Origin: Monocercomonoides exilis PA203
Lineage: Eukaryota > Protista > Preaxostyla
NCBI GenBank assembly: GCA_001643675.2
Contig: LSRY02000069.1
Location: forward strand, 169,227 to 233,226
DNA length: 64,000 nt
Direction: 5' to 3'
Shown: piece by piece, positions 961-63,879 of the stretch
Position numbering within the stretch: the first letter of the stretch is position 1
How the letters are laid out: the number at the start of each line of letters is the position of its first letter
The notes under the pieces: model-generated
The model's database searches: none
What the model saw: the letters and a program-made list of their open reading frames with translations, nothing else
Told to the model about the DNA's origin: nothing
Translations under genes and position numbers: made by a program

Positions 961-1032
961 ATTTCTGATACACTTCCTAATGAAGTGAAATATTGATAAT
1001 TTGATAATTATTTCATATCACACATTAACAGC

Positions 1033-1623
1033 AATACAATAATTGATTTTTGAGTATTTTGCAAATTAATAATAAAAACAAACTTTGTTAAAAATGAACA
1101 ACAGTTATCAAAGTCACATTGAATAGTCTTTCTGTTTGTTTCATCAAAAATTGTCTATGTGCCAAACAAAATAACCAGTTTCTAAACAAATAGGTCAAAA
1201 TTCTTGAATTAATGAAAAATAACAACGATTTGTTCCAAACCTTTTATGTAGCTTTGACATTATATGTCAAACGTTCTCACATATTAAATATATCGAATGA
1301 CTGTAAAATAATAAGAAAAATCTTCGAAGACGGTGCATGGGAAACAATTCATTTCACACAACACTTCATCCCAAATAAAAAATATGTTAAAAAACAAATT
1401 ATTACCAACTTTTTCCACTAACAGATTTTCAAAAAAAGCATCAGACATGTTTATTATTGTTATTTATTCACATTGAGCAAAATAGATCATGGTATTCTTA
1501 ATGGCGCCATTAATAATAATTTGTATTTTTTATGATCAAAAATTTCAAAAATGAATGACAATTTTTTATTTTTGTTTCATTTAATTTGTAATTATTATTG
1601 CTTTATTAATGCAAACATGTCAT
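1033..1623. repeat. Left arm of a ~591-bp near-perfect inverted repeat
   Basis: Reverse complement of 4636-5226. The ORF track shows an identical 69-aa ORF at 1212-1421(+) and 4838-5047(-). One mismatch seen, at 1620. Confidence 0.95.
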
Positions 1624-1758
1624 CAAAAATTAGTTTTGATTTTTTTAATGTTTGAATAAAGGTGAAAAAAAAATTAAATAAAATGCAATCTTTTAATGGT
1701 TTTTTTTAATAAAAAATATTTATGAAAAATTAAAAATTAATTACAAAAAAATAAATTT

Positions 1759-4207
1759 TTATTCAGTAAGTTGATAAAATGTAAATCCAGACTTCCATCC
1801 TTCCAGTGATAAATTTTTCCAACACTGATTCCATTTATCTAGTGCTAGCAGTGACACAACCTCATCGTCGCATTCAAAGAAAATGCTTTTCTCGTCAATC
1901 AAATGCTTTCTATCCTTCACAATTGCAATGAAATGTCCATCTTTGAATTTTGATGTTGAATGAATCACAGTTCCACAAAGCTGATATTTTGCTGTTATCA
2001 TATCATTATCAGAAAAGAATTTCAGGGAAGTTTTTGATTTCAAAGGATCAAAAAAGCAGATATCAAAAGGGCCATTTCCTTTTTCAGCAACAAACAGTTG
2101 AGTTAGAGGGGGATTGACTGATGAAGGTGTCGGATTGTTATGAAACACACACATACCACATGGAAAAGCATCAAGCCTGATCCATTTCAATTCAATTCTT
2201 CCAGTTGAACATTTTCCACACATCTGTTTCTGTTGATCCTCCTCCTCTTTGACAACAGAAAAATAAGAATTTAAACCTTCAACAATGTCAGCGTTTGATA
2301 TTGGCACCTCCAACATTATTCCCCTTGGCTTTGAAGTCAATTGATTACAAGACTGACATTTCATAAACTTGTGACTGTGAAGTTGAAACTTTTTAATAAC
2401 ACCATCATCCTCCTCCGACAATAACTCCAAGAATTTTTCATATGTTGAAAGAGAACCTTTAGGTTCCATCAATGGTCCAAAATTATTCTCATACATTTGA
2501 ATCATTCTCTTCGTTCCCCAATAGAATTTCTGAAAATCACACCCACTCAAACATTGCAGAACCAATTGAAGCGATTGTCGATCTGTTAAGTTCTTTTTGC
2601 TCGAAAAGCTCCTTCCCAAATCCAGAGATGCAAAACATTGACACAATGAACTGAATGAACAAGTCTTTCCCAGATTCCTCAATCCTCTTTTCGAAATTTT
2701 GTATTTGTAAACACAAGATCTTGAACCTATATCACCATCAATCACATGCATTGATAAACAGTCGATAAATCTCTCAATTGGTGCAAACATCAGATAAACA
2801 ATGTCAGTTCTTGAAGGATTTTTTGAATTGGATTCCATATCGTCATCTTCGTTTGAAGATATTTTCTTTTTGCTGTGAAAGAGTGTTGCTAACTCTGGCT
2901 CTAAGGGTGATGAAGTTGACAAAGTTAAAGAGGGAGAGGAAGGGGAGGAGGAGGAAGAAGAACAAGAACAAGAAGAACAAGAAGAAGAGGAGGAGGAGGA
3001 AGAGGAAGGAGAGGAGTGAGATGGAGGAGAAGGAGAAGGAGAGGATGAAAATAAAGGAGAGGAAGAGGAAGAGGAGGATGAGAGAGAGGAAGGAGAGGAG
3101 TGAGATGGAGGAGAAGGAGAAGTGGAAGGGGAAGGAAAAGGAGAAAGAGAAGAAGACAAAGAGGATGAGGAAGAGGGGGAAGCAGGAAAGGAAGCAGATG
3201 AGGATGCGGATGAAACTGTTGAAGGATGAATATTCGAAGGAGTTAATGGAAAAGAAGATGGAAATGATGGGGAGGAAGAAGATTGAAATGAAGATGGAGA
3301 AGCCATATGTAAAGGATGGAAAGAGGATAAATTTGAAGGATAAGGAAAGGATGAGGAAGAAAATGAAGTCGATGGGAATGAGGAGGAGGAAGGAGATGAG
3401 AATGATGGGAAAGGTGAAGAAGATGATGGAATTGATTTTTCTGATGGAGGAAAAGCAGAAAACATAAAAGGAGATGGAAAGGAGAGAGGGTTGATTGAGG
3501 AAGATGAGGATGATGATAATGTTGAAGTTGATGATGATAATGAAATTGATTTTGGAGTGTCATTGTGTGAAATGTAATCTTCTGAATCTTCCATATCCAT
3601 TTCAATTGATTCAATTTTTTCATTTTCTGCTCCAAAATATCCAAAATACGATTTAGAAGAATTAAGTTGAGAAGAACGTTGTTTCCTTTTCATTAGCGGT
3701 GTTCTATCTGTTGACATTGCTTTCTTTTGATCGAAAAAGGATGCTCGAAAAGTCGGTGGTTTTATTTCAAACACAAACTCTTGGCTTAGTGTCTGCTGAG
3801 AGAATTCTTTTGTCAGAATCAATAGCATTTCACTTTGTAATTCATAGGAGAGGCTATTGAAAACATGACTCAGCTCTTTTATGGTTCGTTACAGCGGATC
3901 AACATATTGCAAAATAAAAAAATAATAATAATAAATATTTATAAATCAAAAAAAGAATATTTAAAAAAAAACATTGTATAAAGAAAAATAGCTTAAATTA
4001 AACATAATTAAAAAAAGACACGCCATTTGATGATTTCAATAAACTTCCGAAAAGTTGCCTTTTTACTTGTGTTTGTTGGAAAAACATAAATGAAACCATT
4101 TCTGCATGAGCGGGTGACATCTTTTGAAAAAAATTTGTGAGTTGGACCATATCCTTCTGCAGGCTTCTAAATTCAAATCCATTATGAACCCTTTTAGCAG
4201 ACAACAT
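1759..4207 (-). CDS. Transposon-derived N-terminal domain + Ser-rich linker + USP (peptidase C19) protein, no DDE core; possibly damaged
   Basis: Cys box GLRNLGKTCSFSSLCQCF, CxxC pairs (KCQSC, CGKC), His/Asp box YQLCGTVIHSTSKFKDGHFIAIVK...FFECDDEVV. Exon 1 ~4207-4020 ends LLKSSNG, then an AT-rich intron. There is an in-frame TAA near 3890. Confidence 0.8.
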
Positions 4208-4635
4208 TGTCGATAAACCGATCCAATCAATGAAATTGCAATATATGGGAATTTTTTTTTATGAGAAATGGAACTCATAAAACAATAAAAAAATAATAAA
4301 AATCAAATTCAACCAAAAATGTAAAATTTCTGACCAATAAAAAATTGAACACAAAAAAATAAACAGAGATTATCTAATTTTGAACAAATATTAAATTAGA
4401 TTCGATAAAAAAAATAAAAAAAAAAAATAATCGAAGTTTATTAAAAATTTCAAAAAATTTTTTTCTTTGCAAAAAAATAAAAATCAACTTAAATTGTCTT
4501 CTCATTATTTGAAAATTCAAAAATAAAATTAAAATACTTCAAAAAAATAAATATTTTTTATTTTAATAAAAAATAATTTTATTAATTTTTATATCACTTA
4601 ATAAATTATTTTAATAATTAATTGACAACATATAT

Positions 4636-5226
4636 ATGGCATGTTTGCATTAATAAAGCAATAATAATTACAAATTAAATGAAACAAAAATAAAAAATTG
4701 TCATTCATTTTTGAAATTTTTGATCATAAAAAATACAAATTATTATTAATGGCGCCATTAAGAATACCATGATCTATTTTGCTCAATGTGAATAAATAAC
4801 AATAATAAACATGTCTGATGCTTTTTTTGAAAATCTGTTAGTGGAAAAAGTTGGTAATAATTTGTTTTTTAACATATTTTTTATTTGGGATGAAGTGTTG
4901 TGTGAAATGAATTGTTTCCCATGCACCGTCTTCGAAGATTTTTCTTATTATTTTACAGTCATTCGATATATTTAATATGTGAGAACGTTTGACATATAAT
5001 GTCAAAGCTACATAAAAGGTTTGGAACAAATCGTTGTTATTTTTCATTAATTCAAGAATTTTGACCTATTTGTTTAGAAACTGGTTATTTTGTTTGGCAC
5101 ATAGACAATTTTTGATGAAACAAACAGAAAGACTATTCAATGTGACTTTGATAACTGTTGTTCATTTTTAACAAAGTTTGTTTTTATTATTAATTTGCAA
5201 AATACTCAAAAATCAATTATTGTATT
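4636..5226. repeat. Right arm of the ~591-bp inverted repeat
   Basis: Reverse complement of 1033-1623. Confidence 0.95.
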
Positions 5227-5282
5227 TTTTTAAGTGACTGAAGTGATGATAAGAAGATGAATGAAGTTATTAAACATTATAT

Positions 5283-5522
5283 GGGTTATTCTTTTTGAAA
5301 AGTCGCAAATGTTTAATTATCAAACAAATCAAAAATTTCATATATAGCTCAAATTTCTGTTTCTTCTCACGAATTTTCTTAAGAATGTTTGAAATAGCAT
5401 TATCAAGATATTGATTCCATGTTTGTGAAGTTTAGTGTATGTCAACAAATTTTTGAGCAAAATATGAAATTTTTGGTTAATTGGAAAATTAAACATTTGC
5501 GACTTTTCAAAAAGAATCACCC
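5283..5522. mobile_element. MITE, 240 bp, ~60-bp imperfect TIRs, GGG...CCC termini, ATAT flanks
   Basis: atat|GGGTTATTCTTTTTGAAAAGTCGCAAATGTTTAATT ... AATTAAACATTTGCGACTTTTCAAAAAGAATCACCC|atat. A 4-bp TSD with GRG ends fits Sola-type elements. ATAT is palindromic, so the TSD/TIR boundary is ambiguous. Confidence 0.75.
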
Positions 5523-5892
5523 ATATAAATAAATATATTTCTTCAAGAAAAATTGGAAAGGCTTATTGAAATGTTTTGTGTTGTTTGCTTTTTCGTTAAT
5601 TGTTTTAAATTATTTTATTTAACTTTTGAGTATATTCAAATAAAGATGCTCATCCCTGTTTATCTGCAATTAAATAATTTTCATTCTCTGTTCCATCATT
5701 CATTCAGAACCAACCGATGAGAGATATCGTCAACAACTTGTGCATTTTTCTCTTGTCTCTTCAGCATATTCCTCCTCTTCTTCTTCCCCTTCTTCTGTTT
5801 TGACTGATCTGTCTATTTGGCTGCTTAACGGAATCATTTATGCCAGAACACACGAAATAATCAAATAGTTTTAACTCCCAGTTCTTCGCATA

Positions 5893-8358: not shown

Positions 8359-8954
8359 AAAATGACAACTCGGGATTTTTCTTTATTTTTTGTTTTTTAG
8401 AAAAAAATATTTTTTCGAAAATGACTAATAACTTTATGTAGTTCAAAAACATCTGCATCATTTTATTTTTCCAAATAAAAATAATCACAAAAATGATGAC
8501 AAGCTCAAATGAGAAGTGTGATCAGTCACTTACAGATATATGAAAAAATGAGTATGATTAATCATTTCGATGCAGATGATTAGTATTTGACAAAAACAAG
8601 AAGGAAAAATTTTGCAAGAGGGAAAGTTATTTGATAAAGAATGATCGAAATTTTGATCTATCATTGTGTTTCTTTTTTTCTAATAACTTTCCCTCTTGCA
8701 AAATTTTTCCTTCTTGTTTTTGTCAAATACTAATCATCTGCATCGAAATGATTAATCATACTCATTTTTTCATATATCTGTAAGTGACTGATCACACTTC
8801 TCATTTGAGCTTGTCATCATTTTTGTGATTATTTTTATTTGGAAAAATAAAATGATGCAGATGTTTTTGAACTACATAAAGTTATTAGTCATTTTCGAAA
8901 AAATATTTTTTTCTAAAAAACAAAAAATAAAGAAAAATCCCGAGTTGTCATTTT
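8359..8954. repeat. Palindrome/foldback: 273-bp arms (8359-8631, 8682-8954) with a 50-bp spacer
   Basis: aaaatgacaactcgggatttttc...gggaaagttatt is mirrored by aataactttccc...gaaaaatcccgagttgtcatttt. No mismatch noticed by eye. Confidence 0.95.
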
Positions 8955-9001: not shown

Positions 9002-10012
9002 ATGTCATTTTCAAAACAGGAGTCAACTCTAAATTCACGGTGCAACGTTCTATGGAAAGAAATACAACGCATCGGTGGAAATGACGTTGATTCATTGCTC
9101 GTCTATTTGTTTTACAACTACAGAAAATCATCTGCAGTTATAAATGATTAACTGAAATCCTTGAATGGTTTGGACTTCAAAATTTTTTGATTGATAATAA
9201 CTTGAATTTTTCTCTTGTAATAGAATTTTTTAATTAATATTTGTTATTTTGTTATTTAAAAAACTTAGAATATTACGAAATTCTTCTGAAAGATCTCTCA
9301 GTTGTGTACAAGTACGCACAATTACATACGCAAACGATGATCCTACAAGCACTGACGCGCAACGCATCATTATCTGAGCTTCTGGACTATGGATTTGACA
9401 TTACTGAAGGAAAGTTTAATTATGCAAAACAAACTCTTACAAAAAACCAAGGATTTTTAATTCCGGCACAATTGCCTCACGCACCATCGTGTAAAAGTGG
9501 TTTGTATTGTATTTTTCTATAATTTCATTTTTAACTGTCTTTTTGTTTATTCATTTATTTAACTTTTTTGAGGTCTTAATGAACAAGATTGGGAAAAGGG
9601 CAACAATTGGATGTTGGCCCATTCCACAGAAGCATCAACGTCATTGCAATCAGCCAAGAAAAGATCAAAAAAGGTTCCAGATTACGCACAGTTCATTGAG
9701 GAATCTGCATGGGATAATATTATCATTACAGAAAAAAATAATTCTCACAATATACAATCTTCTCCATCAGAAAAATTATGCCAACAAAATAAAAAATCAA
9801 ATATTATATCAGAAAAAAAATCTTCTCCATCTCATGCAGTTAACGATCCTATTAACACTCCACTTCGAGCTGAAAGATGGACTACAAAAATCAAACAAAA
9901 TAATACACTTCATTACCGTCGAACTTCTCCATCACCAATACCATTTCATAAACTAGTTAAACGAAAATCTCCCATTTCATCATCATCTTCTTCCTCTCCT
10001 TCTTCTTCCTCC

Positions 10013-10044
<32 letters not shown>

Positions 10045-12928
10045 ATTTTCATCATCATCTTCGTCATCATCATCTCCTTCTCCCTCTCCCTCTCCTTCTC
10101 CTTCTCCTTCTCCCTCTCCCTCTCCTTCTCCCTCTCCCTCTCCTTCTCCTTCTCCTTCTCCTTCTCCTTCTTCCTCTTCCTCTTCATCTTCATCTTCATC
10201 TTCATCTTCTTCCTCTTCTTCCTTTTCGATCAAAGTTAAAAGAAAAGATACAATCAATACTTCTCCAGAAGACAAAGCAACCTCATCTTTTTGCAACGAA
10301 AATATATGGGTTAGCGGCCAACTTATGGAATATGTCACCTCATCCACTCTTATTCCTCCTCATACATTCCAAAATCTAGTCTCATCTTTCACAAAAGAGA
10401 GCAACACCTCAACACAATAACAAAAGTCACAGTTTATTACAAGAGATAATTCAACAAATATTGATTCATTTATTTCTTCTTCATCCAAATCAACGGCTAA
10501 TGTTTTAAAATTCACACCAAATACTCCATTAAAAACAGTAAAAGGGTTGGCAAATCTTGGAAACACATGCAACTTGGCATCTCTTCTGCAATGCTGGTCC
10601 TCGATCTGCAGTTCAAAACCAACGATCTTTACAAAATCACACTTAAAAGATACATTATCATTTCAAATGATGAGTATTTGCAATCAAATCCTCAAAGATG
10701 GAAAAAAAGTACATTCATGGATCCCATCAATTGTTAACAAATGGGAAAAATTTTGCAGATACGGAAGCAAGCAGCAGCAGAATGTGTTAGAGGCATTCGA
10801 TAATCTTCATAGACTTTTCGAAAAAGATGGAATGATAAAGAAAGATTGCTTCTGTCCTATTTTGATTTTTCATTTCAAATGATTTAAATGTCAAAAACTC
10901 ACATCACATATCGACAACATCAATAATAGCATAATCATCAATTCTTCATCTATTCACAATGGTTTATCTTCTTTGTTTTCAACTGAAATATTGAACGGAA
11001 AAAATGCTGTCTATTGCAATGAATGCAAAGAAAAATACTGCACTGCTAGGTGGGAGGAAATGATTTCATTTCCAGAGGTCCTAGCCCTCTCCCATGAATG
11101 TACCGATCCTGCTAGTTCTCCACCTTCTCGAACACTTCTAATCGAGACTGATATGTCGAATAAACGTTCATTTTGCAAAGGATTTACAAATGAAAATAAA
11201 ACTTCATTTCACAACCAAAATAAAGAAACAACATTCTATCACTTAATTGGACAAATCCTTCACAAACAGTTTGATAATAGCAACGGTCATCACATTGCTG
11301 TTGTGGAAAGAAATAAAGGAATGAAAAAGATGTGGATCACCTGTAACGATGATGATATTGATGCATTTGACAGTGATAAATGGTCAAAGTCATGGAAAGA
11401 TCTCTTTTCTCAGGGCTATATTCCTTCTTTATCATTCTACGTGAAAGAGAAATCACAATCAACTCAACTAAGTGTCCAATTTGGTGGTTCCTCTATTTCT
11501 TCCTCCTCTTCTCAATCTTTAAATATCAACAACACAAACACAGACACAACTCCATCATCATCGTTTATCACACCACCACATCATTCTTCTTCCATTCCAC
11601 AACTTTCTTCATCAATAATAACTAACTATGGATTGGAAGCACTTAAAGAAAAAAGAAAGAAAACGGGCATCTTTTCTCCCAACGAAAAGAGATTAATCTT
11701 CAAGCCAAAGACGAAATTATGGAAAGAGTTTTCTGAAGAAACAAACATCAAAGTTTCTCTTTCTCACTTCTACAAACTCACCACCAATTTCTCCAAAGCG
11801 AAAAGACGAACGGATCTCTGCGGCATGTGTGAGAAGTTGAACTATCTGGAAAACAAATTGAAGTCATCGCAAAACAAAAATGGACTGTCTGAAGCAGAGT
11901 TTCATACACTTAAATTACTTCGACAACATCGTCTTGTTGCAGAAATGCAACGAAAACATTATCAATCAACTGTTGATAATCTGAAAGAGGGAGAAGCAGT
12001 CTTCGTCTTCGACTTCAAAGAGAAATGGAAACTCCCTATCAGAAAAAATCAACTTCAACAAGAATTCTTTAATTACCAACAAGTTTCTCAATTCACAATC
12101 ATCTCTCTTCAAAAAATTAATAATCAACAAATAAAAAGAACTTTCAACTTCTTCTCCGACTGCCTCTCAAATGATCACAGATTTGTTATTGAGTGTCTGG
12201 AATCTGTGATCAAAAGACACTTCTTCTCAGACACTCACACTTTTAAGTTCTTCTGCGATTCGGGTCCACACAACCGAAATCGCTTCCTCCTTCACTTCAT
12301 TCTCTCCAAACAATCCAAACTTCTCAAAAAGAAAAACACCCAACTCAATTTCTTCGCTGAACACCATGGAAAAAATATTTGTGATAGTGAATTTGGTGCG
12401 TTAGTGAATGCAATCGACAACAATCTTTCGACTGAACACATCACCACACTTCATGACTTAATCAACTTCTTCGAAAGCAATATGAATGTTTCGACATCTG
12501 TTTCATCATCATCACAATTTAATGTTTTTGAATCATCCTCATCAAACAACTCCCCATCGTCATCATCTATCAAGGAGTGTGTGCATGAGAGGTACTTTGA
12601 AGAATATGTACCATCTCAACAAATCTCATGGCCATCATTGTCAGTTCCCCACATGAAAGATTACTTGTATTTTGAGCGCAAGGGCTCATTTGTCTGCGCA
12701 TCTGCTGTTGGATATCTTCCTCAACGCTCTCTGGTTGCACTCGAATCTTCAACAATGAAAGAAAAAGTTCAACGTTCAAGAAAGTCATTTCACTCTGATA
12801 TCACATCATCTAACTCTTCTCTTCTTTCTCAATCTTCTCAAGATCTTCTTTCAAGGAGATTTGAGCTTCTTCTTGACTCTTCTTCTATTAATGAATCTCA
12901 AAATTGTTCTTTTGGTGTCCCCTATTAA
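9002..12928 (+). pseudogene. USP-Sola2-like DDD transposase fusion, copy 1 (exons 9002-9167, 9269-9499, 9573-12928; three in-frame stops)
   Basis: USP Cys box GLANLGNTCNLASLLQCW and His box YHLIGQILHKQFDNSNGHHIAVVE...WITCNDDD. Transposase motifs TDLCGMCEK, FVFDFKEKW, FFCDSGPHNRN, FFAEHHGKNICDSEFG. ORFs 9611, 10547 and 10973 share a frame. Stops at ~9148 (TAA), 10418 (TAA) and 10880 (TGA). Confidence 0.85.
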
Positions 12929-12932
12929 GAAA

Positions 12933-13080
12933 CTAGTTGTTGTGTATGCTCAGCTGGCACTCAATCGGAAGGGTGCTGGACATGACTGTTCGTATTAGAT
13001 ATTGCAGCCTTCGGGCTGCTTTATCCGGACCTGGATACGACGAACAGCCTCCCAGGTGCACAACAGTTAGAATCCGATTG
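12933..13080 (+). ncRNA. Putative structured RNA immediately 3' of the transposase stop codon (copy 1)
   Basis: 14-bp closing helix 12933-12946/13057-13070 (3 GU pairs). Stems 12954-12962/12971-12979 and 12986-12993/13040-13047. Hairpin gcagcc-UUCG-ggctgc at 13004-13019. Candidate pseudoknots 12963-12969/13073-13079 and 13029-13034/13052-13057. Near-identical in all three copies. Confidence 0.7.
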
Positions 13081-13669
13081 TTTTCTTGTGCTTTTTGTCC
13101 CTATAATGTCCCTATTTTCACTTGGTAATTGTCCCGAAATCTATATTTGTATATCTAAATAGAGATTCATTTTTTGATGGGTGTTGTGAAGAGTTTCAAT
13201 GATTTTTGAATTTGATTTTAGGAAAGGAGAATAGCTGAGAGTGTGAAGTGATGTTTCATCACTGTGTCTGCCTTTTTTCTCTGTTGAATTTGATCTTTTT
13301 GAGTTTGGACAAGAGAAATATCAGAAAGTGCAGAGTGAGAAAAAAACAAAAGATAAACATTCAAGTTTGTTTTTGGACTTAAAGAATTTGAAATCTTTTT
13401 TGCTTGGAATTGACTATGACACCATGTATTTGTTGTAATAGTTATGCTTTTTATTGAATCTTTTATTGTTCATGCAAATTGGTATAGAATTGACAATTGG
13501 GGAATGTTTTAATGATGATGTGGTAAAAATATTTTTTTTAGAAAGTGATGCAACAAGAAAAGAAACTTATTTGTTGTTTTCTATTTTCAAGATGATTAAT
13601 ACAATGAAGTGTTAATGTTATTTATGTGTTATTTTGTTTTATGATTGTTATCAAATTAGCAATGTATTT

Positions 13670-23613: not shown

Positions 23614-23945
23614 TCTTCAAGTGAAAAGAGATGTGAAATAAAAAAACTTCCCTTCTTTCCAAGCATTACAAAAAGAGCAGAAGATTAAAGATTTCAAAAA
23701 ATATTTAATAAAGTTAATTTAAAATAAAATGCCTTTTAGGACAAATTGCATTAAACCTGTTTCAACACATTTAGAAACGTGAAACAGCAGAATCAAATTC
23801 CGGCTTCAATTGGGGAAGAGCGAAAAAAATGTCGAGTGAGAAAATAGAAAGAAATATTCAAAATATATAATAGAATCATTGGCAAGTTGTACAAAAAACG
23901 AAAATAAAGAATCAAAACAAAATTTCAAACCTTTTTCTTCATTGA

Positions 23946-24110
23946 AATCCCATTTCAAATTTCATTTTTATTGTTGATCAGGAATTTGCAGAAATGCTTT
24001 TTTGATATATCAAGATAATTCCTATATAATGTTGAAGTGTTTCATAAGGTTAATAACGATTTCTGCAAATTCCCAAGTAATGAAAATTTTTTTATGATCA
24101 TTGAGATCTT
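23946..24110. repeat. Left arm of an imperfect inverted repeat pairing with 33415-33578; contains internal IR GGAATTTGCAGAAA...TTTCTGCAAATTCC
   Basis: cccatttcaaatt...gttgatcaggaatttgcagaa and aacgatttctgcaaattccc...tgatcattgagatc match the reverse complement of 33415-33578. Confidence 0.7.
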
Positions 24111-26465
24111 TTGTGAAACAGTTAATTGTTTGTTGATCAATTAGCTAAAATTCATTTCTTTCAAATAAATACTAACCCTGGGTGACGTACTGACTTCTGA
24201 CGTGAAGTTTTCGATTTTTGACGGACGTGACAAAAATTTCCACGTCACAAAGCAAAACCAACATTATTGTTTTATTGTTTCATAAAAATAAATATTTCTA
24301 AAATAATTTTTTTTGAAAATACTAGATATTTTACGGAGAGTGTGATTCTTTCTGAAAAAATGAACAAATTACGAAAAAGTTTCAGTTGTTACGAATAAGA
24401 AGCACTTGTTACAAGAATAACTCACAATATCTGTCAAAGTCTAATTCTTATAATGGAAACCATTGTTGCATTGAGAAATCAAGATGTTTCGGGAGATTTT
24501 TTGATTTTCAAAAAAATAACAAAAGAACATTCACACATTAACAAAAAACGATTGGGAAAATATATTAATATTTGATAGTTTCTTATTTGAACAAACGAGA
24601 TTTTTATAGGAATATCATGGAGAATGAATGTTCACAACATTATAAACAAACATAATCCATGAAATAATGAAAAGGCTTCGCTGACTGAGTGATTTGAAAG
24701 TTTTTTTCATTAACCCACAACAATTTCATTTTATTGATTACCAAAAAATACAATGTTATTCCGAGAAAGACAGACCTGTTACGGGTTTTTCATTGTTTAT
24801 CAGTAAAAAAATTTTATTAATCGAAGGAATGAGTAATTGGAGGAACAACATAGAGGTTTCAATTAATAGCTTTTGTTATTCGTAATAACTTGTTTGTATT
24901 TAGTAAATATTATTATTTACGAAACAATTCATAGTTATCGTAAAATATCTACTGAAAATCATATTTTCCATTATAATTTTTTTTTAACTGACGTGTAAGC
25001 GGTGATCGGATTTTTGGAACGTTACTGAAGTCAATGACGTCATTGACTTCACTTCCTGTCAGCTATTCGAAAAAGTCGAAAGAATGAGCAAAAGAACAAA
25101 AAAAACCACACATATCAAAAGAAAGTTTTTGATTTCATTTTTCTGAAAAAACAACCATTAATTTTCTAATAATTTTTGATAATTCAACAATTTTGATGAA
25201 AGAAGCCATGACAAATTTGAAAAATCAACAAAACAATGCTATGTGTTGTTTTTTTTCCAATTTTGCAAACATTGGAATAAAAATATTGACATGGTTTGAA
25301 TTGTTCATCAATTTTTTCAATATTTTATAATCTTATTTGAACTAATTCATTTTCATAATGTTTTTCAATCATGTTCGGCGTATGCATATCATTCAATAAT
25401 ATCAATAGAAAATTATGATCTATTTCAAATTACCCTAAAAAACAACAGATGAATGTATTTCATCAAAGGATTCATGTTCTATTCACATATTATAATAAGA
25501 TGATAACATATTCTCCTTTGATAATTTGCAAAACATCACCAACATCTGAACTATAAGTTGTTAGAACTGACACATGCAATAACTCGGATTGATCAAAATT
25601 GTTGTTTGCAAAACATAAATTTGATGATTTGTATAAGATTAAGAATTTTCACAAGGAACAAATCTTCTCATTTTAATTTCAAACATTTGGTATATTTAGT
25701 ATTTATCTTTCAGACATATAGAAATTCATTTCCTTATCATCAAAGATATTTATCTCTTCGTTTTAAAAAACAGGTTTTTTTTTATTCGAATTCTTTCATA
25801 ACTTCTATTCATCAGCTTTTATTTCTTGCGATCAGGTTTTATCCAATGCCAATAACTCTCTTCTGAAGTTGTTTGAAATTTCTGTTATTGAAGCGAAATT
25901 AATGAGGTGGTGAGATAAGCTTTTTCAAAAGAAAGAAATGGAGAAGATACAGCTTAGAATAACGGGAGAACGAGATGATATCCTTATTTTTATGAAATAT
26001 ATATACAGATAAGTTGTTGAAAAAAGATTTTCGCAGAAGAAAATCAGAAAATGGAAACATTTAAAGGAATTGTCTATATTTCTCGATTCACTTCTTTTTG
26101 AAAAAGCAAATTTTAACCAAAACAGCATAGAAAAAGGCTCAAAAAGATTCTTTGTATTCAATTTTGTGAAATTAAAATGAGTTCGAGTTAAAAATGAAAA
26201 ATTTCTCTGTTCATCACTCATTCATAAAATCGAAGTTAAATATAAACTGAAAATCAAATCTATCAAAATTTTATTTGCAAATAATCAAGAATTTCATAAA
26301 ACAAAATGATAACATATTTGTGTTTTTTCCTTCCTTATTTATAAATATTTCCATTTTGCTTTTTCCATTTCATTATCTGTATTTTCATCCAATCTTCAAA
26401 AAAGTTCCAAAAAGAAACACACACAATTCAATTCTTTCACTTGCCATTTCATTATTCAGTGTTAA

Positions 26466-27592
26466 TTATTGCAGTTCTTTAAAAACGGTGTCAGCCGCGC
26501 AACTCTCAAACAAGTCTTCAACTTCAATAGCTCTGCTAATCACAGAATTTCGCTGGGAATAAATGCATGTGTCGCTAATAACTCTGTGATCATCATTCGC
26601 ATCTCGAAATACCTGAAAAACGCTGTCAATCAATCTGATTGACTTTTTATTCAACGATTTGCAATCGTCAAGAAATGCTCCAGAACTTGGATCCATCTTA
26701 TTATCGCAAGCTCTTCTTTCGTTTCTCTTCCTCTTTCTTCTTTTTTTCTTTTCCATTCCACACATCTTGTCAGCTCTTCTAATTCTCTTGATGCTTCTCT
26801 CGTAAAATGCAGTTCATTCACAACAACATCTTCCAAAGATCTGTCGTAGGCTAATCTGAAAATTAAAAACTCCCAAGCAGATTGATAGGCAAGATGTGTC
26901 AAATTGTTGTGTTCTTGATGATAAAGGATAATCTCTTTGATTTCATTCAAATGCAATTCTTTATCCATTTTCTAATAAAAAAGAAATGATAAAATAAAGC
27001 AAAATCAATTCAACAAAGGGAGAAAAGAAAGATCATACAAAACATTTCCCAATGTGACATAAAGTCAGCAATACCATTTCCACATCTTTCTAGACTTCTT
27101 TGTTCTCCTCTTTTTTCAATGCAGCTTTCAGAAGGCAAGGCACAGTAATTGATATCAATTCCTTTGAGAAGTCGGATCTTATAGAAACATGGCATTCACA
27201 AAGATCAACCACATTATTTTCATTTCTTTTTTCTTATCTTCATCTTCAATCATCTTCTCGAATCTTTTGTTCAATGAAGAATACCCAAAACCAAAAACAC
27301 ACATATCTTTTAAAACGATGCAATATCCAAAATGTTTCAGCAAACAAAAAGCATTTGCAATTTTTATTTTCCCTTCTTTAATCATTTCGTCCATTTCATC
27401 GATCTATTTTTTTGTGAAGACAGATTCAAATTCTTCTCCCTTCATTTCTTCAATTATTTCATTTATTTCTTCAATTTTCTGCGCTTGTGCATTCTCGTAG
27501 TAATGTCCCATCTCATGAAGAAATTTTTCAAAAAAAAATAAATAGTCAAATGCAATAATCATGAAATAAAAAAAAAAAAAAACAGCAGACAA
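26466..27592 (-). pseudogene. Degraded member of an expanded Monocercomonoides-type uncharacterised helical protein family
   Basis: Segments QKIEEINEIIEEMKGEEFESVFT, LLKHFGYCIVLK, LHLNEIKEIILYHQEHNNLTHLAYQSAWEFLI and VNELHFTREASRELEELTRCVEWKRKKEE resemble, from memory, a highly expanded oxymonad family. Frameshifts and deletions are present. Confidence 0.65.
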
Positions 27593-27944
27593 ACTGAGAT
27601 ATTTTTTGATGAAATTCTATTTGTCCGTATTTCGAAGTTGTCATGCAAATAAATCATCACGATGTTTGTTAATCTTATTGAACAAACAAAAAGTTGAATA
27701 AAATTGTTTTCTGCAATTCAAACGTATTGCATTCTCAATGATATCAAATTTCACACCATTACGGAAAGAAATATTCATATTTTATTGGATTATATAAAAT
27801 ATAACTTGAATTGTGACTTGAATCATATTGTAATGGGATCGATTGATCAATCGTTTTTAATAGGAAATTAATTAAATTATGAAAATTTACTATTAAATGT
27901 TATATTTCAATTGTTCATTTTTTTGCAATAATAGAAACAACAAT

Positions 27945-27946
<2 letters not shown>

Positions 27947-27990
<44 letters not shown>
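27947..27990. repeat. Poly-T tract (44 nt) near the right end of the TIR element
   Basis: Directly visible. Confidence 0.95.
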
Positions 27991-27991
<1 letters not shown>

Positions 27992-28762
27992 GAAGTGGAA
28001 AATTGGTGACGGACGTGACGAATTTTTTTCTTCACGTCACCCAGGGTTAATAAATACTTATTGCTTTTAACGTTAATTTAAGTAATATGGAAAAAACTGA
28101 AGATGAATTCTAGATAAAAAAATTTTATATTTTCGAATCTGAATCAAAATCGAAATGGAAAAAATATCAATGAAATGAAAAAAATACGAAAAATATTAAC
28201 AATCGTTCACCAATCAAAATGACATAAATAAACAAAAAGTACTTCATGATATTGATCATTAAAAAAATTGAAAACAGTCAGATATATTCTAATCAGATTC
28301 AATAACTTTCAAAAAAACACAATTCTGTCACATAATCATAAAACAATCACCAAATATCAACTAAATATTAGCAATTTTGAACAATAAAAGATATGAGAAA
28401 AAACAATACTTCAACATCAAAATAACTGTATCAAAGACAATTCCTAACAAAAAAGAATACTTATATAAAAAGTTCAAAAATCTATAAGTCCATTTTCCAT
28501 CTGTTTTCCATCCACTCTTCCCTTTCTTATATTTCTCTCCCTTTGACTCAAAAAGATCAAATCCAACATTGAAAAAAGACAGACACAATGATAAGACAAC
28601 ATATCACACTCTCAACAACTCTCCCTTTCATAAACCTCACCCAAAGATCAATGAATTCCCTCACAACTCTCTCTATTAATGAATCTCGATAAATACATAT
28701 ATATGCGGGACAATAACCAATTTTATTATAGAAACAATATAGGGACAAAAACCACAAGAAAA

Positions 28763-28910
28763 CATTCGGATTCTAACTGTTGTGCACCTGGGAGGCTGTT
28801 CGTCGTATCCAGGTCCGGATAAAGCAGCCCGAAGGCTGCAATATCTAATACGAACAGTCATGTCCAGCACCCTTCCGATTGAGTGCCAGCTGAGCATACA
28901 CAACAACTAG
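28763..28910 (-). ncRNA. Putative structured RNA, copy 2
   Basis: Reverse complement matches 12933-13080 except tccgaatg for tccgattg. Directly follows the TAA stop at 28915-28917. Confidence 0.7.
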
Positions 28911-28914
28911 TTTC

Positions 28915-30278
28915 TTAATAGGGGACACCAAAAGAACAATTTTGAGATTCATTAATAGAAGAAGAGTCAAGAAGAAGCTCAAATCTCCTTGAAAGAAGAT
29001 CTTGAGAAGATTGAGAAAGAAGAGAAGAGTTAGATGATGTGATATCAGAGTGAAATGACTTTCTTGAACGTTGAACTTTTTCTTTCATTGTTGAAGATTC
29101 GAGTGCAACCAGAGAGCGTTGAGGAAGATATCCAACAGCAGATGCGCAGACAAATGAGCCCTTGCGCTCAAAATACAAGTAATCTTTCATGTGGGGAACT
29201 GACAATGATGGCCATGAGATTTGTTGAGATGGTACATATTCTTCAAAGTACCTCTCATGCACACACTCCTTGATAGATGATGACGATGGGGAGTTGTTTG
29301 ATGAGGATGATTCAAAAACATTAAATTGTGATGATGATGAAACAGATGTCGAAACATTCATATTGCTTTCGAAGAAGTTGATTAAGTCATGAAGTGTGGT
29401 GATGTGTTCAGTCGAAAGATTGTTGTCGATTGCATTCACTAACGCACCAAATTCACTATCACAAATATTTTTTCCATGGTGTTCAGCGAAGAAATTGAGT
29501 TGGGTGTTTTTCTTTTTGAGAAGTTTGGATTGTTTGGAGAGAATGAAGTGAAGGAGGAAGCGATTTCGGTTGTGTGGACCCGAATCGCAGAAGAACTTAA
29601 AAGTGTGAGTGTCTGAGAAGAAGTGTCTTTTGATCACAGATTCCAGACACTCAATAACAAATCTGTGATCATTTGAGAGGCAGTCGGAGAAGAAGTTGAA
29701 AGTTCTTTTTATTTGTTGATTATTAATTTTTTGAAGAGAGATGATTGTGAATTGAGAGACTTGTTGGTAATTAAAGAATTCTTGTTGAAGTTAATTTTTT
29801 CTGATAGGGAGTTTCCATTTCTCTTTGAAGTCGAAGACGAAGACTGCTTCTCCCTCTTTCAGATTATCAACAGTTGATTGATAATGTTTTCGTTGCATTT
29901 CTGCAACAAGACGATGTTGACGAAGAAGTTTCAGAGTGTGAAACTCAGCAGAAGAAAGTCCATTTTTGTTTTGCGATGACTTCAATTTGTTTTCCAGATA
30001 GTTGAGCTTCTCGCACATTCCACAAAGGTCAGTTCGTCTTTTCGCTTTGGAAAAGTTGGTGGTGAGTTTGTAGAAGTGTGACAAAGAAACTTTGATATTC
30101 GTTTCTTCTGAAAACTCTTTCCATAATTTTGTCTTGGGCTTGAAGATTAATCTCTTTTCATTGGGAGAAAAGATGCCCGTTTTCTTTCTTCTTTCTTTTA
30201 GTGCTTCCAATCCATAGTTAGTTATTATTGATGAAGAAAGTTGTGGAATGGAAGAAGAATGATGTGGTGGTGTGATGA

Positions 30279-30341
<63 letters not shown>

Positions 30342-33414: not shown

Positions 33415-33578
33415 TGATCTTATTGATCAATGAAAGATTTTAATTACACGGGAATTTGCAGAAATCGTTTTTGCGTATATTTATCTCTTCTTTATATCAT
33501 TTATTCCATTTAAAACTAAAAATTAATCAATTCTGCAAATTCCCGATCAACGAAAAAATTAAAATTCGAAATGGGTTT
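33415..33578. repeat. Right arm of the imperfect inverted repeat (pairs with 23946-24110)
   Basis: gatcttattgatca...gggaatttgcagaaatcgtt...ttctgcaaattcccgatcaac...gaaatggg. Confidence 0.7.
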
Positions 33579-34701
33579 ATGGAAAAATTTAAAAATTTGA
33601 TTTTTCTGAAAAGGAACTTTGTTTTTTGAAAGCAAAATTCAAATGTGATTCATGTCTTCTTTTATGCTTCTTCTTCCTCGTTGTTTTCAAGTATACTGTT
33701 CTTCATTTCCACCACAAAATTGGAATAAAAGCATTCATCATTTTAAACCTCTTAATTATCATAATTGTTATTACACCTACAATTATGACATCCTTCGTTT
33801 CCTTATCTTTCTTTCTTCTTCGCAAATTCCTTCTGCTCCGCAACACTCATCTCTTTCGACAAGCAAACACAAATTATCTTCTTTTCCATCATCTTCGCCT
33901 GCGCTATTATCTTCCCCGAATCCACTCATTCGTTGAATGATCGAGACGATGCTGCTTTCTCCTTCCTCTTCCTTCTCCTTCCCCTTCTCCACCACCTATC
34001 TTTCAACCAATCCCTTCTCCTCGTCATTCCCATCCATTACCACCACCTCTCATCTCCTTCAGCTTCTGGCAGATCTGATGCTTTCTTCTCAATCTGGCCA
34101 GCTCTTCTTCAGCATAGCCATGTTTGTGAAAGAAGTGTTGAGGGAAATGTGGATGAGAAGAGTGGTGAAGAGGATATTAAGGAGAAGATGGAAAGAGGGG
34201 AGAAGGGAGGGAAGAGAGGGAAGAGGAAGTTGGATGAAGAAAGAAGAGGAAATAATATGGAAGGAGGGCTGTATGGTGTTTGAATAGAAGAAGAAAATGA
34301 AGCTGAAGAGGATAATATGAGATTGGATGAAGGAAAAAGAGAAGAAGAATAAAAAGAATGAAAGATGAGAAGAGAAGAGAAAATCAAGGAAGAAGAAAAA
34401 GAAGAATCCAAAAGAAGTGAAGAAGAAAGGATTTGAAAAAGAGAGCAGTAGATAGAGAATGAAGGAACGAAGAGCGATGAGATGCCCACAGAAAAGGCAG
34501 TCATCGAGTATTGTATGCAAGTACTCACCAACATCGCGAGAATTCGAATAATAACAAATTCTACATTGATCCTGTGCTCCTTGGGCTGGTTGTGGAATTG
34601 ATGAGGTTTGCCTCATCTATTTTTCTTTCTATTTATTTGATCAATTTAATTATATTCTTTTTGAACTTTCATTTACATATTCTTCAAATATTAATTATAA
34701 T

Positions 34702-48911: not shown

Positions 48912-51900
48912 AAGATCATGGGCGTTTTGGTCATTTTATTTTTTTGCTTAAAACAGCATAAAATGATATTTTCAGCTTGTAAAGTACAGAAAAAGTGACT
49001 TTCAATGTTGACCAAAATGCACAAATAATTTGGTTTTTTTAAGATCATTAATTTTGAATATTCTATTTAATTTTTTTTTTTTTGTTTTTTTTTTTTTTTT
49101 TATTTTTTATTATTTAATAATTAACTTTTTGTTATTTTTATCGAATGATTCAAATGAATTTCTCTTTTTCTATTTCTTTTTTTTTTTTATTAATTTTTGT
49201 TACAAAAACTGAAGTGAGAAAAAACAAGCATTAGCAATAAATTTGAAGTGTGAAATATGTCACATGACTTTTTTATAAAAAGAAAGTGAAGGTTTCCAAT
49301 TTTCTTGTGACATTAAAATCCAGTATTCCTCCCATTTGTCTGGAATTATTTCTGACACGCTATTATCATTGCACTCCAAAAAAATTGAAGAATATGACGG
49401 TCTATTCACATCCTTTTTGACAATCGCAATAAAATGACCTTGCTCGTATATAGCTGTTGAGTGAATTATGCAACCAACCAAATCATAAACGATAGATCGC
49501 TCAATATCCTTCAAAATCAGATCCCTTTCTTCCTTGAACTTAAATGGGTTTTTTATTTCCATGTCATTCGGTCCCGGTCCCTTTACAACAAACACAATCG
49601 ATTTTGGAGGTGCGACAACCCTGAAAGATTCATTGACATTATGATTAATTGTAAGAATATCTGGAAATGATACAAAACGCACGAAAGGAATACAGGGTTT
49701 GTCCGTTTCACACCTATTACACCTTCGATTTCGTTGTTCTGTGATAAGATTAATGTTTGTTAGTAATTTTAACAGGCCTCCGATAATGTCAGATCCATTT
49801 ATTGTGAAATAATACCTCGTTTCACGATTCGAGACTAAGAAATTTTCACAATGAGTGCATTCACGAACGTTTTGGCTGTTGATTGAAAACATATGATAGA
49901 TTTTATTCTTTTTATCCGACAACATATCCAACATTTTGTCAAAAACATCAGTCAGTTTTTGTGCCACATTTCTTGGTCCAATTTTCAATTCGTAAAAGTT
50001 CCATATAACTGTTCCATTCCAAACTTTGCTGTTCTTTTTTGACTTCCGGAGCATTTCGAATAATTGAATGAACTCTGCTTGTTCATCGTTCATCATTGCA
50101 ACTTGATTGCTGTTAATGTCAAGTGCAGCGAAACATTGACAAACAGAAGATAATGAACAGACACTTCCTGTGTTCACAAGCCCTCTTTTCGACTCCAATT
50201 GTTGCAACACACATGAACGTGATTTCTCTTCGTTTTCATCATCCCGTTTGAGTGTATATGAAAAAGGTTTTAATAGTTCGTTTGAATCTTTCTTTCTTTT
50301 TTCAATATTTTCTTCAGCTTCAAAATGAAAATTATTAAGATAATCAACTATTCTATCAATTGAAGAAGATGGAGAAATTGTCTTTTCTATTGGGACAGTT
50401 GGTGGTTGTGAGAAAGATGATTGTTCTGGAGCAAATGATGGAGAATTCTGCAGAGAGGACAAAGAAAAATTATGATATGCGTAAGATGTTGAATTTTTCG
50501 CGTTTAAAAACAGCAGTGATGATTGTGGTGAGTTTCCTGAAGGTGATGAAGAATTTGAATCAAAAGGAGAAGATGCTGTGAATGCTTCTGAAGTTGGGGA
50601 AGAAGAGAACGCAAAAAGCGATTCTTGAATAACTGTTTGAGAGGTTCTTGTGGATTTTTCATTTTGGAATGGAGTCTTCATAGAACATTCTGATAAATGA
50701 AATGAACCGTCTTCAGTTGCTGAAAAGGGAGAGGAGGGAGGGGAGGGAGGGGAGGGAGATGAGGGAGATGAGGGAGATGAGGAAGAGGAAGAGGAAGAGG
50801 AAGAGGAAGAGGAAGAGGAAGAGGAAGAGGAAGAGGAAGAGGAAGAGGAAGAAGATGAAGAAGTGTGAGGCGGTTCAGAAGAAGAAGAGAAAAAAGATGA
50901 AGAAATAAGATCTTTTTGTGTGGATGGTAAAGTTTGGTGAAGTTGCAATGAAGAAGAGGAAGGTGAAGGGGAACAAGAAGAGGAGGAGGAGGATACAGAA
51001 GAAGATGATGAAGGAATAAATGAATAATTAGGAATAGAATTAAAAGAAGGAGGAGGAGAAGAAGAAGAAGAGGAAGAAAAGGATAATGAGGAAGAGGAAG
51101 AGGAAGATGATGATAACAGAGGCAAAGGAGGAAGTGCAGAAGTTGATGATGCTTGGATAGAAGTTGAAGTTGAAACATCTTCTGCAGCGGGTGATGAGGA
51201 AGGAGACAGAGAAGAAGGCTGAGCTGAAGTTGTTGTTGCTGAGGAAGCTGATGCAAAAGGAGAGGATGAGGAGGAAGTAGAATTGATCTCATTTTTCAAT
51301 GAAGAAGTGTTCGCATGAGAATGATATGATACATTGGAAAGATCACTTTCAGAGTTGATATTGCTCACGTTAGGCGGAGGAAATGAGCGATCAACTGAAG
51401 CAGATAATGATGAGGAGAAGATAAGTGGTGTTCCAAGTGAAGAAGAAGAGGAAGAAGATAAAAAAGGACAAGATGAAGAGGAAGTGGAAGAAGATGAATT
51501 GCGTTCAAGGGATGCATTGAAAGGGGATGAAGATGGGGGAGAAGAGACATCGGGTACGGAAATGATGGGGAAAGAGGAGATGTTGGTGAAGGAGTTGGGT
51601 GAGGAAGAAGAAGAGGAGCAATGCAATGAAGAAGATAACAATGGCTGAGAAGGATTTGAAGCCGAAGAGTTATTATCATTTGATGATGACGGAAACTTTG
51701 ACATCATTGATTGATCAGTATTATTCTTCAATTGTGGCAATGTTGAATGAATGAATGAAGAACTCGAAGTGAATGAAGAAAATGAGCTTGTTGATGTATT
51801 TCCCAGTGGAGATGCAACTGATGAGACTGGAACAGAAAAAGAAGGAATCGAAATATTTTTTGAAGCAATATTTTCAGGCAATTTGTTGCGTTTTTTCTCT

Positions 51901-53065
51901 GTTAGAGAAGGCTCATGAAAAAGTGATGAAGTGGATGGTAAAGGAAGAGAAGCACTTGATGAAGAATGAGCTAAAGATGAAGAAATTTTTTCTGAAGAAA
52001 AAGGAACGAATGAGGATAAAGGAAATGTGTTGAAAGGAGAGTCAGGTGAGATGGAAGGCGGAGATGAGAAAGGAGAAGGAAATGAAGTCAACGATGAAGA
52101 AGAAGACTGAACATGAAGAGGGTTAAATGAAAATGCTTCTTTTCTTTTATCTTCTTCGTCATATCTCCTGCTCGATGATGTGTCGCTTTCTTCATCAAAA
52201 CTGAGCAAGAATTCCTTACTGAAATTTTCATTTATTTCACTTCTTCTGAATGTATTTTCTTTCGGAAGCAGTTTCCTTTTTCTTTGTTGAATCCAATTAG
52301 CATCATCATATAAGGATATTTCTATATTGTATCCGTATTCATTTCGTAATTCCTTTTGTGTATAATTTTCTGTTAATGCAATAATCATCTTATTCTTGAT
52401 GGGAGCAGAAGCATCATTGAACGCAAACTTCAATTCTTTCACAAGACACGTGAGAGGTGCTTCAAAGAAGGTTTCGAAAGAAAGATAAATTTATAAATTA
52501 GGAAAAAAATGTTAGCACAAAGAAAAATGATGAAAAAAAATTTAGAATGATTACAATAAAAAAACAAACAAAGAGGTGATTTCATGTAATCAAAACAAAG
52601 CAATTTGCCTAAATCGTTTTCATTCACGAACTTCGTAAACACAAGCAAGGCTCTATCGTATGGCATATTACGAAGCAATTCTTCGATGCTGTCAACGTCT
52701 GCTTTAATTGACTTCCTGCTCATTCCATGATGTTTTCTTCCAGAATTGAACATAGAAAAATATCTTTTCTTCAATTTTATCAGCAAGAAATAAATATTGA
52801 TTGAAGATAGTTAAAAATAATGAAAACACAAAATTATAAAATTTCAAATAATGAATTCAGTGCTGTTCTTAACCTCTTTCACAAAGATGAATAGAAAATG
52901 AAAACAGGAAAAAATGTTTTTAAGTGATTTTTGATCAGAAATATACAAATAACTTGTGCATTTTGCGCGATCCAAAAAACTTTATTTTCCTATTCTAATT
53001 TGTATTTTTGATCAAGTTGTGCTGAACAAAACAAAAACAATTCATGCCCAAATTGCCATGATCTT
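48912..53065. mobile_element. Non-autonomous TIR element (~4.15 kb) with a 4-bp TSD TGAA, carrying a USP gene
   Basis: TGAA|AAGATCATGG ... CCATGATCTT|TGAA. ~140-bp imperfect TIRs (48912-49055 / 52928-53065) share CAAAATGCACAA.T.ATTTG...GATCA. Confidence 0.7.
49260..52753 (-). CDS. Transposon-derived N-terminal domain + long Ser-rich linker + USP (peptidase C19) protein, no DDE core
   Basis: Open 1060-aa frame. Cys box GLVNTGSVCSLSSVCQCF, CTHC/CNRC pairs, His box YDLVGCIIHSTAIYEQGHFIAIVKK...FLECNDNSV. Exon 1 runs from 52753 (MFNSGRK...YMKSPL^gtttgt). Confidence 0.85.
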
Positions 53066-59495: not shown

Positions 59496-59777
59496 GGAAT
59501 GTGATATTTGTTTGAATATTATTCATTTAATTTGTGAATATTATTGCTTTAATAATGCTTACAAGTCATCAGATAATAGTTTTGTAATTTTTATCGTTCA
59601 ATATGAGGTTAAAAAAATTCTGAAACATATATTTCTTATTTGAGCAAAAATATTGATATTTGGTTTTGTTTATCGAAATTTCTATGTTGAAAATACAATT
59701 AAAACAATAAATGCAGAGCTGTGAAATTTTTATTAATTGATAATAATTCCATAATAAATTTGAAAAAAATCACAAAT

Positions 59778-62700: not shown

Positions 62701-63726
62701 GAGTTTCATACACTTAAATTACTTCGACAACATCGTCTTGTTGCAGAAATGCAACGAAAACATTATCAATCAACTGTTGATAATCTGAAAGAGAGAAGCA
62801 GTCTTCGTCTTCGACTTCAAAGAGAAATGGAAACTCCCTATCAGAAAAATCAACTTCAACAAGAATTCTTTAATTACCAACAAGTTTCTCAATTCACAAT
62901 CATCTCTCTTCAAAAATTAATAATCAACAAATAAAAAGAACTTTCAACTTCTTCTCCGACTGCCTCTCAAATGATCACAGATTTGTTATTGAGTGTCTAG
63001 AATCTGTGATCAAAAGACACTTCTTCTCAGACACTCACACTTTTAAGTTCTTCTGCGATTCGGGTCCACACAACCGAAATCGCTTCCTCCTTCACTTCAT
63101 TCTCTCCAAACAATCCAAACTTCTCAAAAGAAAAATACCCAACTCAATTTCTTCGCTGAGCACCACGGAAAGAATATTTGTGATAGTGAATTTGGTGCAT
63201 TAGTTAATTCTATCGACAACAATCTTTCGACTGAACACATCACCACTTCATGACTTAATCAACTTCTTCGAAAGCAATATGAATGTTTCGACATCTGTTT
63301 CATCATCATCACAATTTAATGTTTTTGAATCATCCTCATCAAACAACTCCCCATCGTCATCATCTATCAAGGAGTGTGTGCATGAGAGGTACTTTGAAGA
63401 GTATGTACCATCTCAGCAAATTTCATGGCCTTCACTGTCAGTCCCTCACATGAAGGACTACTTATACTTTGAGCGCAAGGGCTCATTTGTCTGCGCATCT
63501 GCTGTTGGATATCTTCCTCAACGCTCTCTGGTTGCACTCGAATCTTCAACAATGAAAGAAAAGGTTCAACGTACAAGGAAGTCCATTTCACTCTGATATC
63601 ACATCATCTAACTCTTCTCTTCTTTCTCAATCTTCTCAAGATCTTCTTTCAAGAAGATTTGATCTTCTTCTTGACTCTTCATCTTTAAATGAATCTCAAA
63701 ATTGTATTAATGGTGTTCCTTTTTAA
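59778..63726 (+). pseudogene. USP-Sola2-like DDD transposase fusion, copy 3 (exons 59778-59943, 60047-60277, 60351-63726; several small frameshifts)
   Basis: Canonical Cys box GLANLGNTCYLASLLQCW, His box GHYIAVVE...TCNDDD, TDLCGMC, FFCDSGPHNRN. Indels fall mostly in homopolymers or repeats (~60440, ~60860, ~62790, ~62920, ~63130, ~63245, ~63585), so some may be sequencing errors. Confidence 0.85.
60752..61028. repeat. (TTC)n/(TCA)n microsatellite encoding the poly-Ser linker
   Basis: Directly visible. Confidence 0.9.
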
Positions 63727-63730
63727 GAAA

Positions 63731-63879
63731 CTAGTTGTTGTGTAATGCTCAGCTGGCACTCTATCGGAAGGGTGCTGGACATGACTGTTCGTATTAGATA
63801 TTGCAGCCTTCGGGCTGCTTTATCCGGACCTGGATACGACGAACAGCCTCCCAGGTGCACAACAGTTAGAATCCGATTG
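63731..63879 (+). ncRNA. Putative structured RNA, copy 3
   Basis: Differs from copy 1 only by a 1-nt insertion (tgtaatg) and caatcgga to ctatcgga, whereas the last codons of the ORF and the downstream DNA differ more. Confidence 0.7.

Follow-up and report, generated by a model that had tools for sequence, protein, structure and literature searches.

Eukaryotic cut-and-paste transposons are generally held to require no more than a transposase and their DNA ends, and to our knowledge no conserved structured RNA has been described in them apart from those of the Fanzor nucleases. Self-cleaving ribozymes are known from retroelements, HDV-like in R2 and LINEs and hammerheads in Penelope elements, and small ribozymes typically combine a small invariant core with helices that vary. 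Sola transposons have terminal inverted repeats and duplicate a 4-bp, AT-rich target, and the Sola2 elements of slime moulds carry Fanzor1 (PMC3627910). The omegaRNA ends at the element end and draws its guide from the flank; those of TnpB and Fanzor2 have a conserved 3'-terminal pseudoknot, which that of Fanzor1 lacks (PMC13565253). In the twister-sister ribozyme either C or U is tolerated at the -1 position, and the change G5C abolishes cleavage (PMC5660989). Literature searches returned nothing on Monocercomonoides Sola elements or on Sola elements with a structured RNA. We describe here a structured RNA directly behind the transposase gene of a Sola-like element, which represents a real and hitherto undescribed family of RNAs in one clade of eukaryotic DNA transposons.

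The window, the whole stretch of DNA analysed, comprises 64,000 nucleotides of Monocercomonoides exilis PA203 (contig LSRY02000069.1, positions 169,227 to 233,226). It holds three copies of the transposase gene, all broken by stops or frameshifts, copy 1 having in-frame stops at 10418 and 10880. The spliced gene was queried in separate pieces. The protein encoded upstream of the RNA matched several uncharacterised M. exilis proteins at 90-93%, and its USP domain was recognized as a Pfam UCH match. Residues D377, D459 and D501 of the DDD domain are invariant, and the predicted model of the transposase domain resembles RNase H/DDE transposases and has a plain RNase H/DDE fold; Atlas placed the protein with DUF7869 eukaryotic clusters. 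The motifs DFKE, CDSG and HGK-x-CD we take to be Sola-like. The host element is a Sola-like (Sola2-like) DDD transposon carrying an in-frame USP domain. A TIR/TSD pair was sought in the window and none was found, only internal inverted repeats. The elements are large: other copies keep aligning for more than 7 kb beyond the RNA, which is therefore internal to the element.

Several other repeats were observed around these genes. The internal inverted repeats (33416-33663 and 23932-24175, ~250 bp, 70% identical) bracket the transposase gene inside the larger element and contain repeated TTTGCAGAAAT-like boxes; they are possibly old ends or transposase binding sites. A 3.9-kb insertion within copy 2 (24176-28048) has piggyBac-like ends, with terminal inverted repeats beginning CCCTGGGTGACGT and CTAA/TTAA flanks, and host-gene-like cargo in which no transposase was seen. 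Just upstream of copy 1 lies a 280-bp near-perfect palindrome with a 36-nt spacer (8359-8954), and an older, decayed palindrome is found at 5277-5528; the segment between the two is inverted relative to loci L001 and L003. One USP-only gene (1759-3888, minus strand) sits within 611-bp, 98% identical inverted repeats (1013-5246), and a second spans 49260-52490.

The preliminary description of this locus had drawn attention to a GC-rich island behind the transposase stop codon, closed by a 14-bp helix. Both features were borne out. The RNA begins 4 nt past the TAA at 12926-12928 and has a GC content of 51%, compared with 24% in the following 920 nt, and its closing helix, P1, consists of 11 Watson-Crick and 3 G-U pairs with no A-C mismatch. 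The sense strand folds with -54.2 kcal/mol (z -3.46), better than all 200 shuffles. G-U pairs and a UUCG loop that work only on the sense strand had also been taken to favour RNA: the G-U/A-C count agrees with this, but the minus strand also folds well (-47.8 kcal/mol, z -3.10) and the strand preference from energy alone is therefore only weak. The parts of the RNA and its surroundings are listed in Table 1.

Table 1. Coordinates of the transposase gene, the structured RNA and flanking repeats in the window, and related loci.
Feature	Position	Strand	Remarks
Transposase gene copy 1	9002..12928	+	spliced; N-domain, USP and Sola-like DDD
Catalytic Asp codons, copy 1	12011, 12257, 12383	+	
Left arm of decayed inverted repeat	12446..12900	+	3' end of transposase CDS
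Structured RNA copy 1	12933..13080	+	three-way junction and family-specific 3' tail
P1, 5' arm	12933..12946	+	pairs with 13057-13070; first 4 pairs canonical in 5/5 families
Junction strand (U/G)GCUYA	12947..12952	+	conserved; 12951 is the variable C/U position
P2 hairpin	12954..12979	+	12954-12962 with 12971-12979; differs between families
P3	12984..13049	+	12984-12993 with 13040-13049
Interior of P3	within 12984..13049	+	GAUA-containing linker, P4 (13004-13019), GG(A)C-Y-K-G segment
Junction strand UCCCAGG	13050..13056	+	conserved; C(C)C(A/C)GG across families
P1, 3' arm	13057..13070	+	
Right arm of decayed inverted repeat	13161..13612	+	decayed inverted copy of CDS end, ~60% identical
Structured RNA copy 2	28763..28910	-	within conversion tract common to copy 1
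Structured RNA copy 3	63731..63879	+	behind frameshifted transposase copy 59690-64000
Locus L005			second M. exilis family; transposase 42% identical
Locus L006			metagenome; transposase 40% identical
Loci L009, L010			metagenomes; transposases 30-31% identical

A model built from the query family, scanned over the window, returned the three copies in Table 1 only. They are 98.7-99.3% identical, as the reported near-invariance had implied; copies 1 and 2, however, share a gene-conversion tract (11553-13115 with 28728-30290), being 99-100% identical from ~11950 through the RNA and 55-76% identical further out, and the invariance of the three copies is therefore not independent evidence. Among four other genomic copies, the RNA (p 0.054) is far less diverged than the catalytic domain at its synonymous sites (0.30). 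In the same four copies, p is 0.058-0.065 at synonymous positions in the final ~110 codons and 0.072 over the 100 nt next downstream; within the family the RNA is about as conserved as both. The divergence noted downstream is a gradual decay, and the DNA there is still homologous. Changes within the query family's RNA are one-sided only. Gut-metagenome contigs differ by 3.7% over the RNA, compared with 8.1% over the coding region. A broad trough in diversity among copies, synonymous sites included, spans 12584-13180 and is centred near the RNA, which suggests repeated conversion or hitchhiking there.

It is conceivable, then, that the RNA has no function, its conservation arising from gene conversion or recent copying and its fold from decayed inverted repeats. 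The tract shared by copies 1 and 2 and the equal conservation of neighbouring neutral sites within the family agree with this reading. Neither process, however, can yield compensatory helices and identical junction strands in families that are 30-42% identical in protein and come from different hosts. A profile search gave 696 related transposases, and the DNA was examined for part of them. In four loci (L005, L006, L009 and L010) a complete related fold was found just 3' of the stop codon, on the sense strand (z -6.3, -3.8, -6.3 and -5.8), and a fifth, L025, ends inside a related fold. In the five transposase families (the query and these four), the RNA core lies 17-95 nt past the stop and follows a common plan: P1, (U/G)GCUYA, P2, P3, C(C)C(A/C)GG and P1'. 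P2 is variable and sometimes comprises two hairpins, P3 encloses one or two hairpins, P1 extends to 20-26 bp in L009 and L010, and the whole RNA ranges from ~110 to ~190 bases. A strict descriptor matched at these RNA sites only, in the loci and the window; a relaxed one gave five more matches elsewhere in 465 kb, all folding more weakly.

Covariation across the five families was also assessed. The first four pairs of P1 were canonical in 20/20 cases (shuffle mean 11.0) and those of P3 in 40/41 (shuffle mean 23.0), and each column of both helices shows two to four pair types; the alignment was anchored by hand, which favours pairing. Run over 77 kb, a covariance model from the query family alone placed L009 first (E 0.015) and aligned the junction strands in the same way; it did not recover L005, L006 or L010. 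Over the start of the RNA and the final codons L009 and L025 share 84% identity, compared with 66-72% in their best coding blocks. From the folds in diverged families, the covariation, the conservation and the confinement to one clade, the structure is therefore real and selected, as the preliminary description had suspected of a conserved sense-strand RNA, and the absence of any function has been largely refuted and is a slight prospect at most. Conservation resides in the junction rather than in the tetraloop or the terminal pseudoknot.

That last point departs from the preliminary description, which had stressed a C(UUCG)G tetraloop and two pseudoknots. The tetraloop is replaced by UCUG, UUUG or CGAA among family copies and cannot be regarded as conserved. 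Both complementarities do exist (12963-12969 with 13073-13079, and 13029-13034 with 13052-13057). The first, between the P2 loop (12964-12969) and the 3' end (13073-13078), is possible in the query family only: it comprises 6 bp in most copies, with a U-U at the seventh pair in five of seven copies and one G-U change, and no equivalent was seen in L005, L006, L009 or L010. The UUCG loop and the terminal pseudoknot are embellishments peculiar to this family. The second candidate is invariant in the query family and therefore uninformative, and it competes with P1 and with a hairpin; all families have a CYUG/CUGG-like segment in a comparable position. The core is compatible with two registers, either a covarying U-A/G-C pair and a G-C pair with a GG bulge, or C-G and U-A/U-G pairs.

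The RNA-bearing transposases all fall within one clade of 25 rows (SH 97). The motif was not found behind transposases outside this clade, behind the Blattamonas member, or behind the transposases of L011, L012, L014, L020, L021 and L022, and, as already noted for the USP-only genes, it was absent behind both of those in the window by fold, descriptor and model. The best reading is that the RNA family belongs to one Sola-like clade of oxymonads and related gut protists. The earlier suggestion that the RNA tracks with the catalytic core of the transposase is upheld by its absence after the USP-only genes and its confinement to one clade, and both facts would suit an RNA that is a cofactor or autoregulatory ligand, the transposase binding the junction, whether carried by its mRNA or by a released fragment, for assembly in cis, for being held inactive, or for guidance. 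The RNA has also travelled with the core, both within the conversion tract and between subfamilies that share only ~67% identity in their N-terminal halves. Simple linkage, however, also explains such co-travel, many related transposases (the six loci named above) do without the RNA, the modelled core is a plain RNase H/DDE fold, and the loops and flank, taken as guides, matched neither the element's inverted repeats nor other sites. We regard a ligand of this kind as unlikely.

Other structures were observed near related transposases. In L022, ~430 nt behind the transposase, there is a different block of six or seven hairpins (1895-2235) with a possible loop-to-downstream pairing, on a contig that was binned as bacterial but has introns. 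In L019 (Blattamonas), 3 kb away from the transposase, a long hairpin (9765-9831) precedes an RT-like frame; its apex, GCUCA..CAGG, may be due to chance. L019 also contains a 580-bp, 99.7% identical inverted repeat (946-2298). Downstream of the L011 transposase is a tandem array of ~75-80-nt GC-rich units (4040-4800).

The RNA was compared with known families. Rfam 15, ribozyme models included, matched nothing over the motif in the window, the locus or the homologs; ARAGORN found no tRNA or tmRNA, BLAST against phages and plasmids gave chance matches only, and viral contigs searched by protein and with two DNA patterns gave none. Two outcomes named in the preliminary description as refuting, a lack of covariation and a match to a known family, thus did not occur. 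Stop-codon readthrough and a SECIS element were considered and fail because neither the stop type (UAA, UAG or UGA) nor the spacing to the core is constant and because the reading frame ends, in copy 1 after 18 codons; a SECIS element is also wrong on the core. HDV, twister, pistol, hatchet and hammerhead ribozymes, group I P3/P7, RNase P P4, SRP Alu and xrRNA were set aside by eye for wrong topology or missing cores, as were a Helitron 3' end and a MITE. An SRP helix 8 look-alike occurs on the minus strand of the query family only and was also dropped by eye.

An analogy with omegaRNA scaffolds had been raised at the outset, together with the remark that no RuvC nuclease is encoded. The remark holds for unspliced cargo and for those parts of the giant elements that lie within the loci: no TnpB/Fanzor motif was found in six frames of the window and loci, and Pfam gave no RuvC-family match among 20 ORFs, ten further ORFs included. 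The analogy fails because no nuclease was found, the position is internal and there is no guide, the 3' flank being conserved in seven copies with alignment continuing for kilobases downstream. An orphan scaffold left by a lost Fanzor gene would account for the similar size and 3' position, and Fanzor1 does occur in Sola2 elements (PMC3627910). An internal RNA with a conserved 3' flank is nevertheless unlike an omegaRNA, and the omegaRNA of Fanzor1 is the one without a 3' pseudoknot (PMC13565253). An orphan would moreover decay, whereas this RNA is under constraint in five families, and we consider such an origin highly improbable.

The RNA sits in the spacer, or apex, of a decayed ~460-bp inverted duplication. 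In the 450 nt that follow it, the final ~490 nt of the CDS recur as a decayed inverted copy (score 109.5 vs. 33 +/- 4); the arms are present in six copies, weakest in copy 2, and L010 has a shorter pair. With these L010 arms and the 20-26-bp P1 of L009 and L010, fold-backs centred on the motif are seen repeatedly and may be a by-product of the RNA's stable hairpin. G-U pairs are in excess in the long inverted arm (29/61 vs. 19/106); strand-biased mutation or T-richness would give the same result, and selection for a long duplex is therefore not claimed. The motif could in principle act not as RNA but as single-stranded DNA or a protein-bound DNA site, a hotspot for recombination or fold-back, since in two families it forms the apex of inverted duplications, it occupies the middle of the diversity trough, and G-T wobbles form in DNA too. 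Its constant placement on the sense strand just behind the stop argues against this, as does a multi-helix junction with conserved unpaired strands, which suits RNA; cut-and-paste transposition, furthermore, has no long-lived single-stranded stage. Action at the DNA level is thus very unlikely.

One resemblance bears on what the RNA might do. GCUYA, present in 5/5 families and adjoining a helix, corresponds to the cleavage strand GCUC^A of the twister-sister and lantern ribozymes, and its sole variable base is the -1 base, C or U. The opposite strand, CCCAG, shares four of five bases with GCCAG of the OR4K15 lantern ribozyme in three families, in the right register beside the helix, and is CCCGG in two; both strands together match the OR4K15 loop at 7-10 of 11 positions (PMC11620745). 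Membership of the twister-sister/lantern class (twister-sister, PMC5660989; LINE-1 and OR4K15, PMC11620745) is opposed by three differences: the base equivalent to the essential G (G5/G36) is C in 5/5 families, the SL4 hairpin loop (UGCAAGU) was sought in the folds of the RNA family and is absent, and the loop leads on its far side into a three-way junction rather than a second helix. The likeness was found post hoc among about a dozen ribozyme classes, and, with the number of classes tried taken into account, we estimate a probability of a few percent that it is due to chance. The mechanism we favour is metal-dependent self-cleavage at GCUY^A, as a putative and tentative one that we hold to be less than probable; a twister-sister-like cut would fall between 12951 and 12952.

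We think it reasonably probable that the motif is a new family of cis-acting structured RNAs occupying the beginning of the transposase mRNA's 3' UTR, on account of its position, its strand and its small invariant core with free periphery. The RNA would be made by read-through of the transposase transcript and would act on the fate of that mRNA; it probably regulates this message and perhaps does so by cutting it. Putative cleavage would detach the ORF from the poly(A) tail, the antisense arm and the downstream cargo, and detachment could tune transposase output and end read-through. A non-catalytic structure that binds protein or blocks exonucleases could serve the same purpose, and within the cis-acting reading we give it about the same weight as cleavage. 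The absence of the motif after the USP-only sister genes counts against a cis-acting mRNA element, a generic one of which might have been kept there.

A bolder proposal is that the RNA is either an obligate partner of a eukaryotic cut-and-paste DDD transposase, released and bound by the enzyme for assembly or targeting, or a new ribozyme class with a twister-sister strand in a three-way junction; this is a genuine possibility, though one that we would not presume. If either were true, it would be the first such structured RNA in a eukaryotic DNA transposon without an RNA-guided nuclease; either the known ribozymes would gain a class or DDD transposition would gain an RNA layer. As it stands, a clade keeps a covarying RNA fold behind its transposase in families only 30-42% identical, without a Fanzor-type nuclease. 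What is new here is the five-family covariation with metagenomic homologs, the demotion of the UUCG loop and terminal pseudoknot, and an exact candidate cleavage site.

The host element resembles Sola transposons in its DDD triad, RNase H fold and DFKE, CDSG and HGK-x-CD motifs, and differs from them in its in-frame USP domain, large cargo and downstream RNA. Like an omegaRNA of TnpB or Fanzor, the RNA is a ~150-nt structure at the 3' end of a transposon ORF, and its 5' helix can overlap the stop codon (L009 and L025); unlike one, it accompanies no RuvC nuclease, lies away from the element end, has no flank-derived guide and does not conserve a 3' pseudoknot. With twister-sister and lantern ribozymes it shares the GCUYA strand, with C or U at -1, and a CCCAG strand one base removed from GCCAG; C in place of the essential G, the missing SL4, the three-way junction and CCCGG in two families set it apart. 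It differs from retroelement ribozymes in its host, a DNA transposon without an RNA intermediate, in its location 3' of the ORF, and in the absence of HDV, hammerhead, twister, pistol and hatchet cores by Rfam and by eye. What it has in common with them is that it is a compact, conserved RNA on a mobile element, plausibly for transcript processing.
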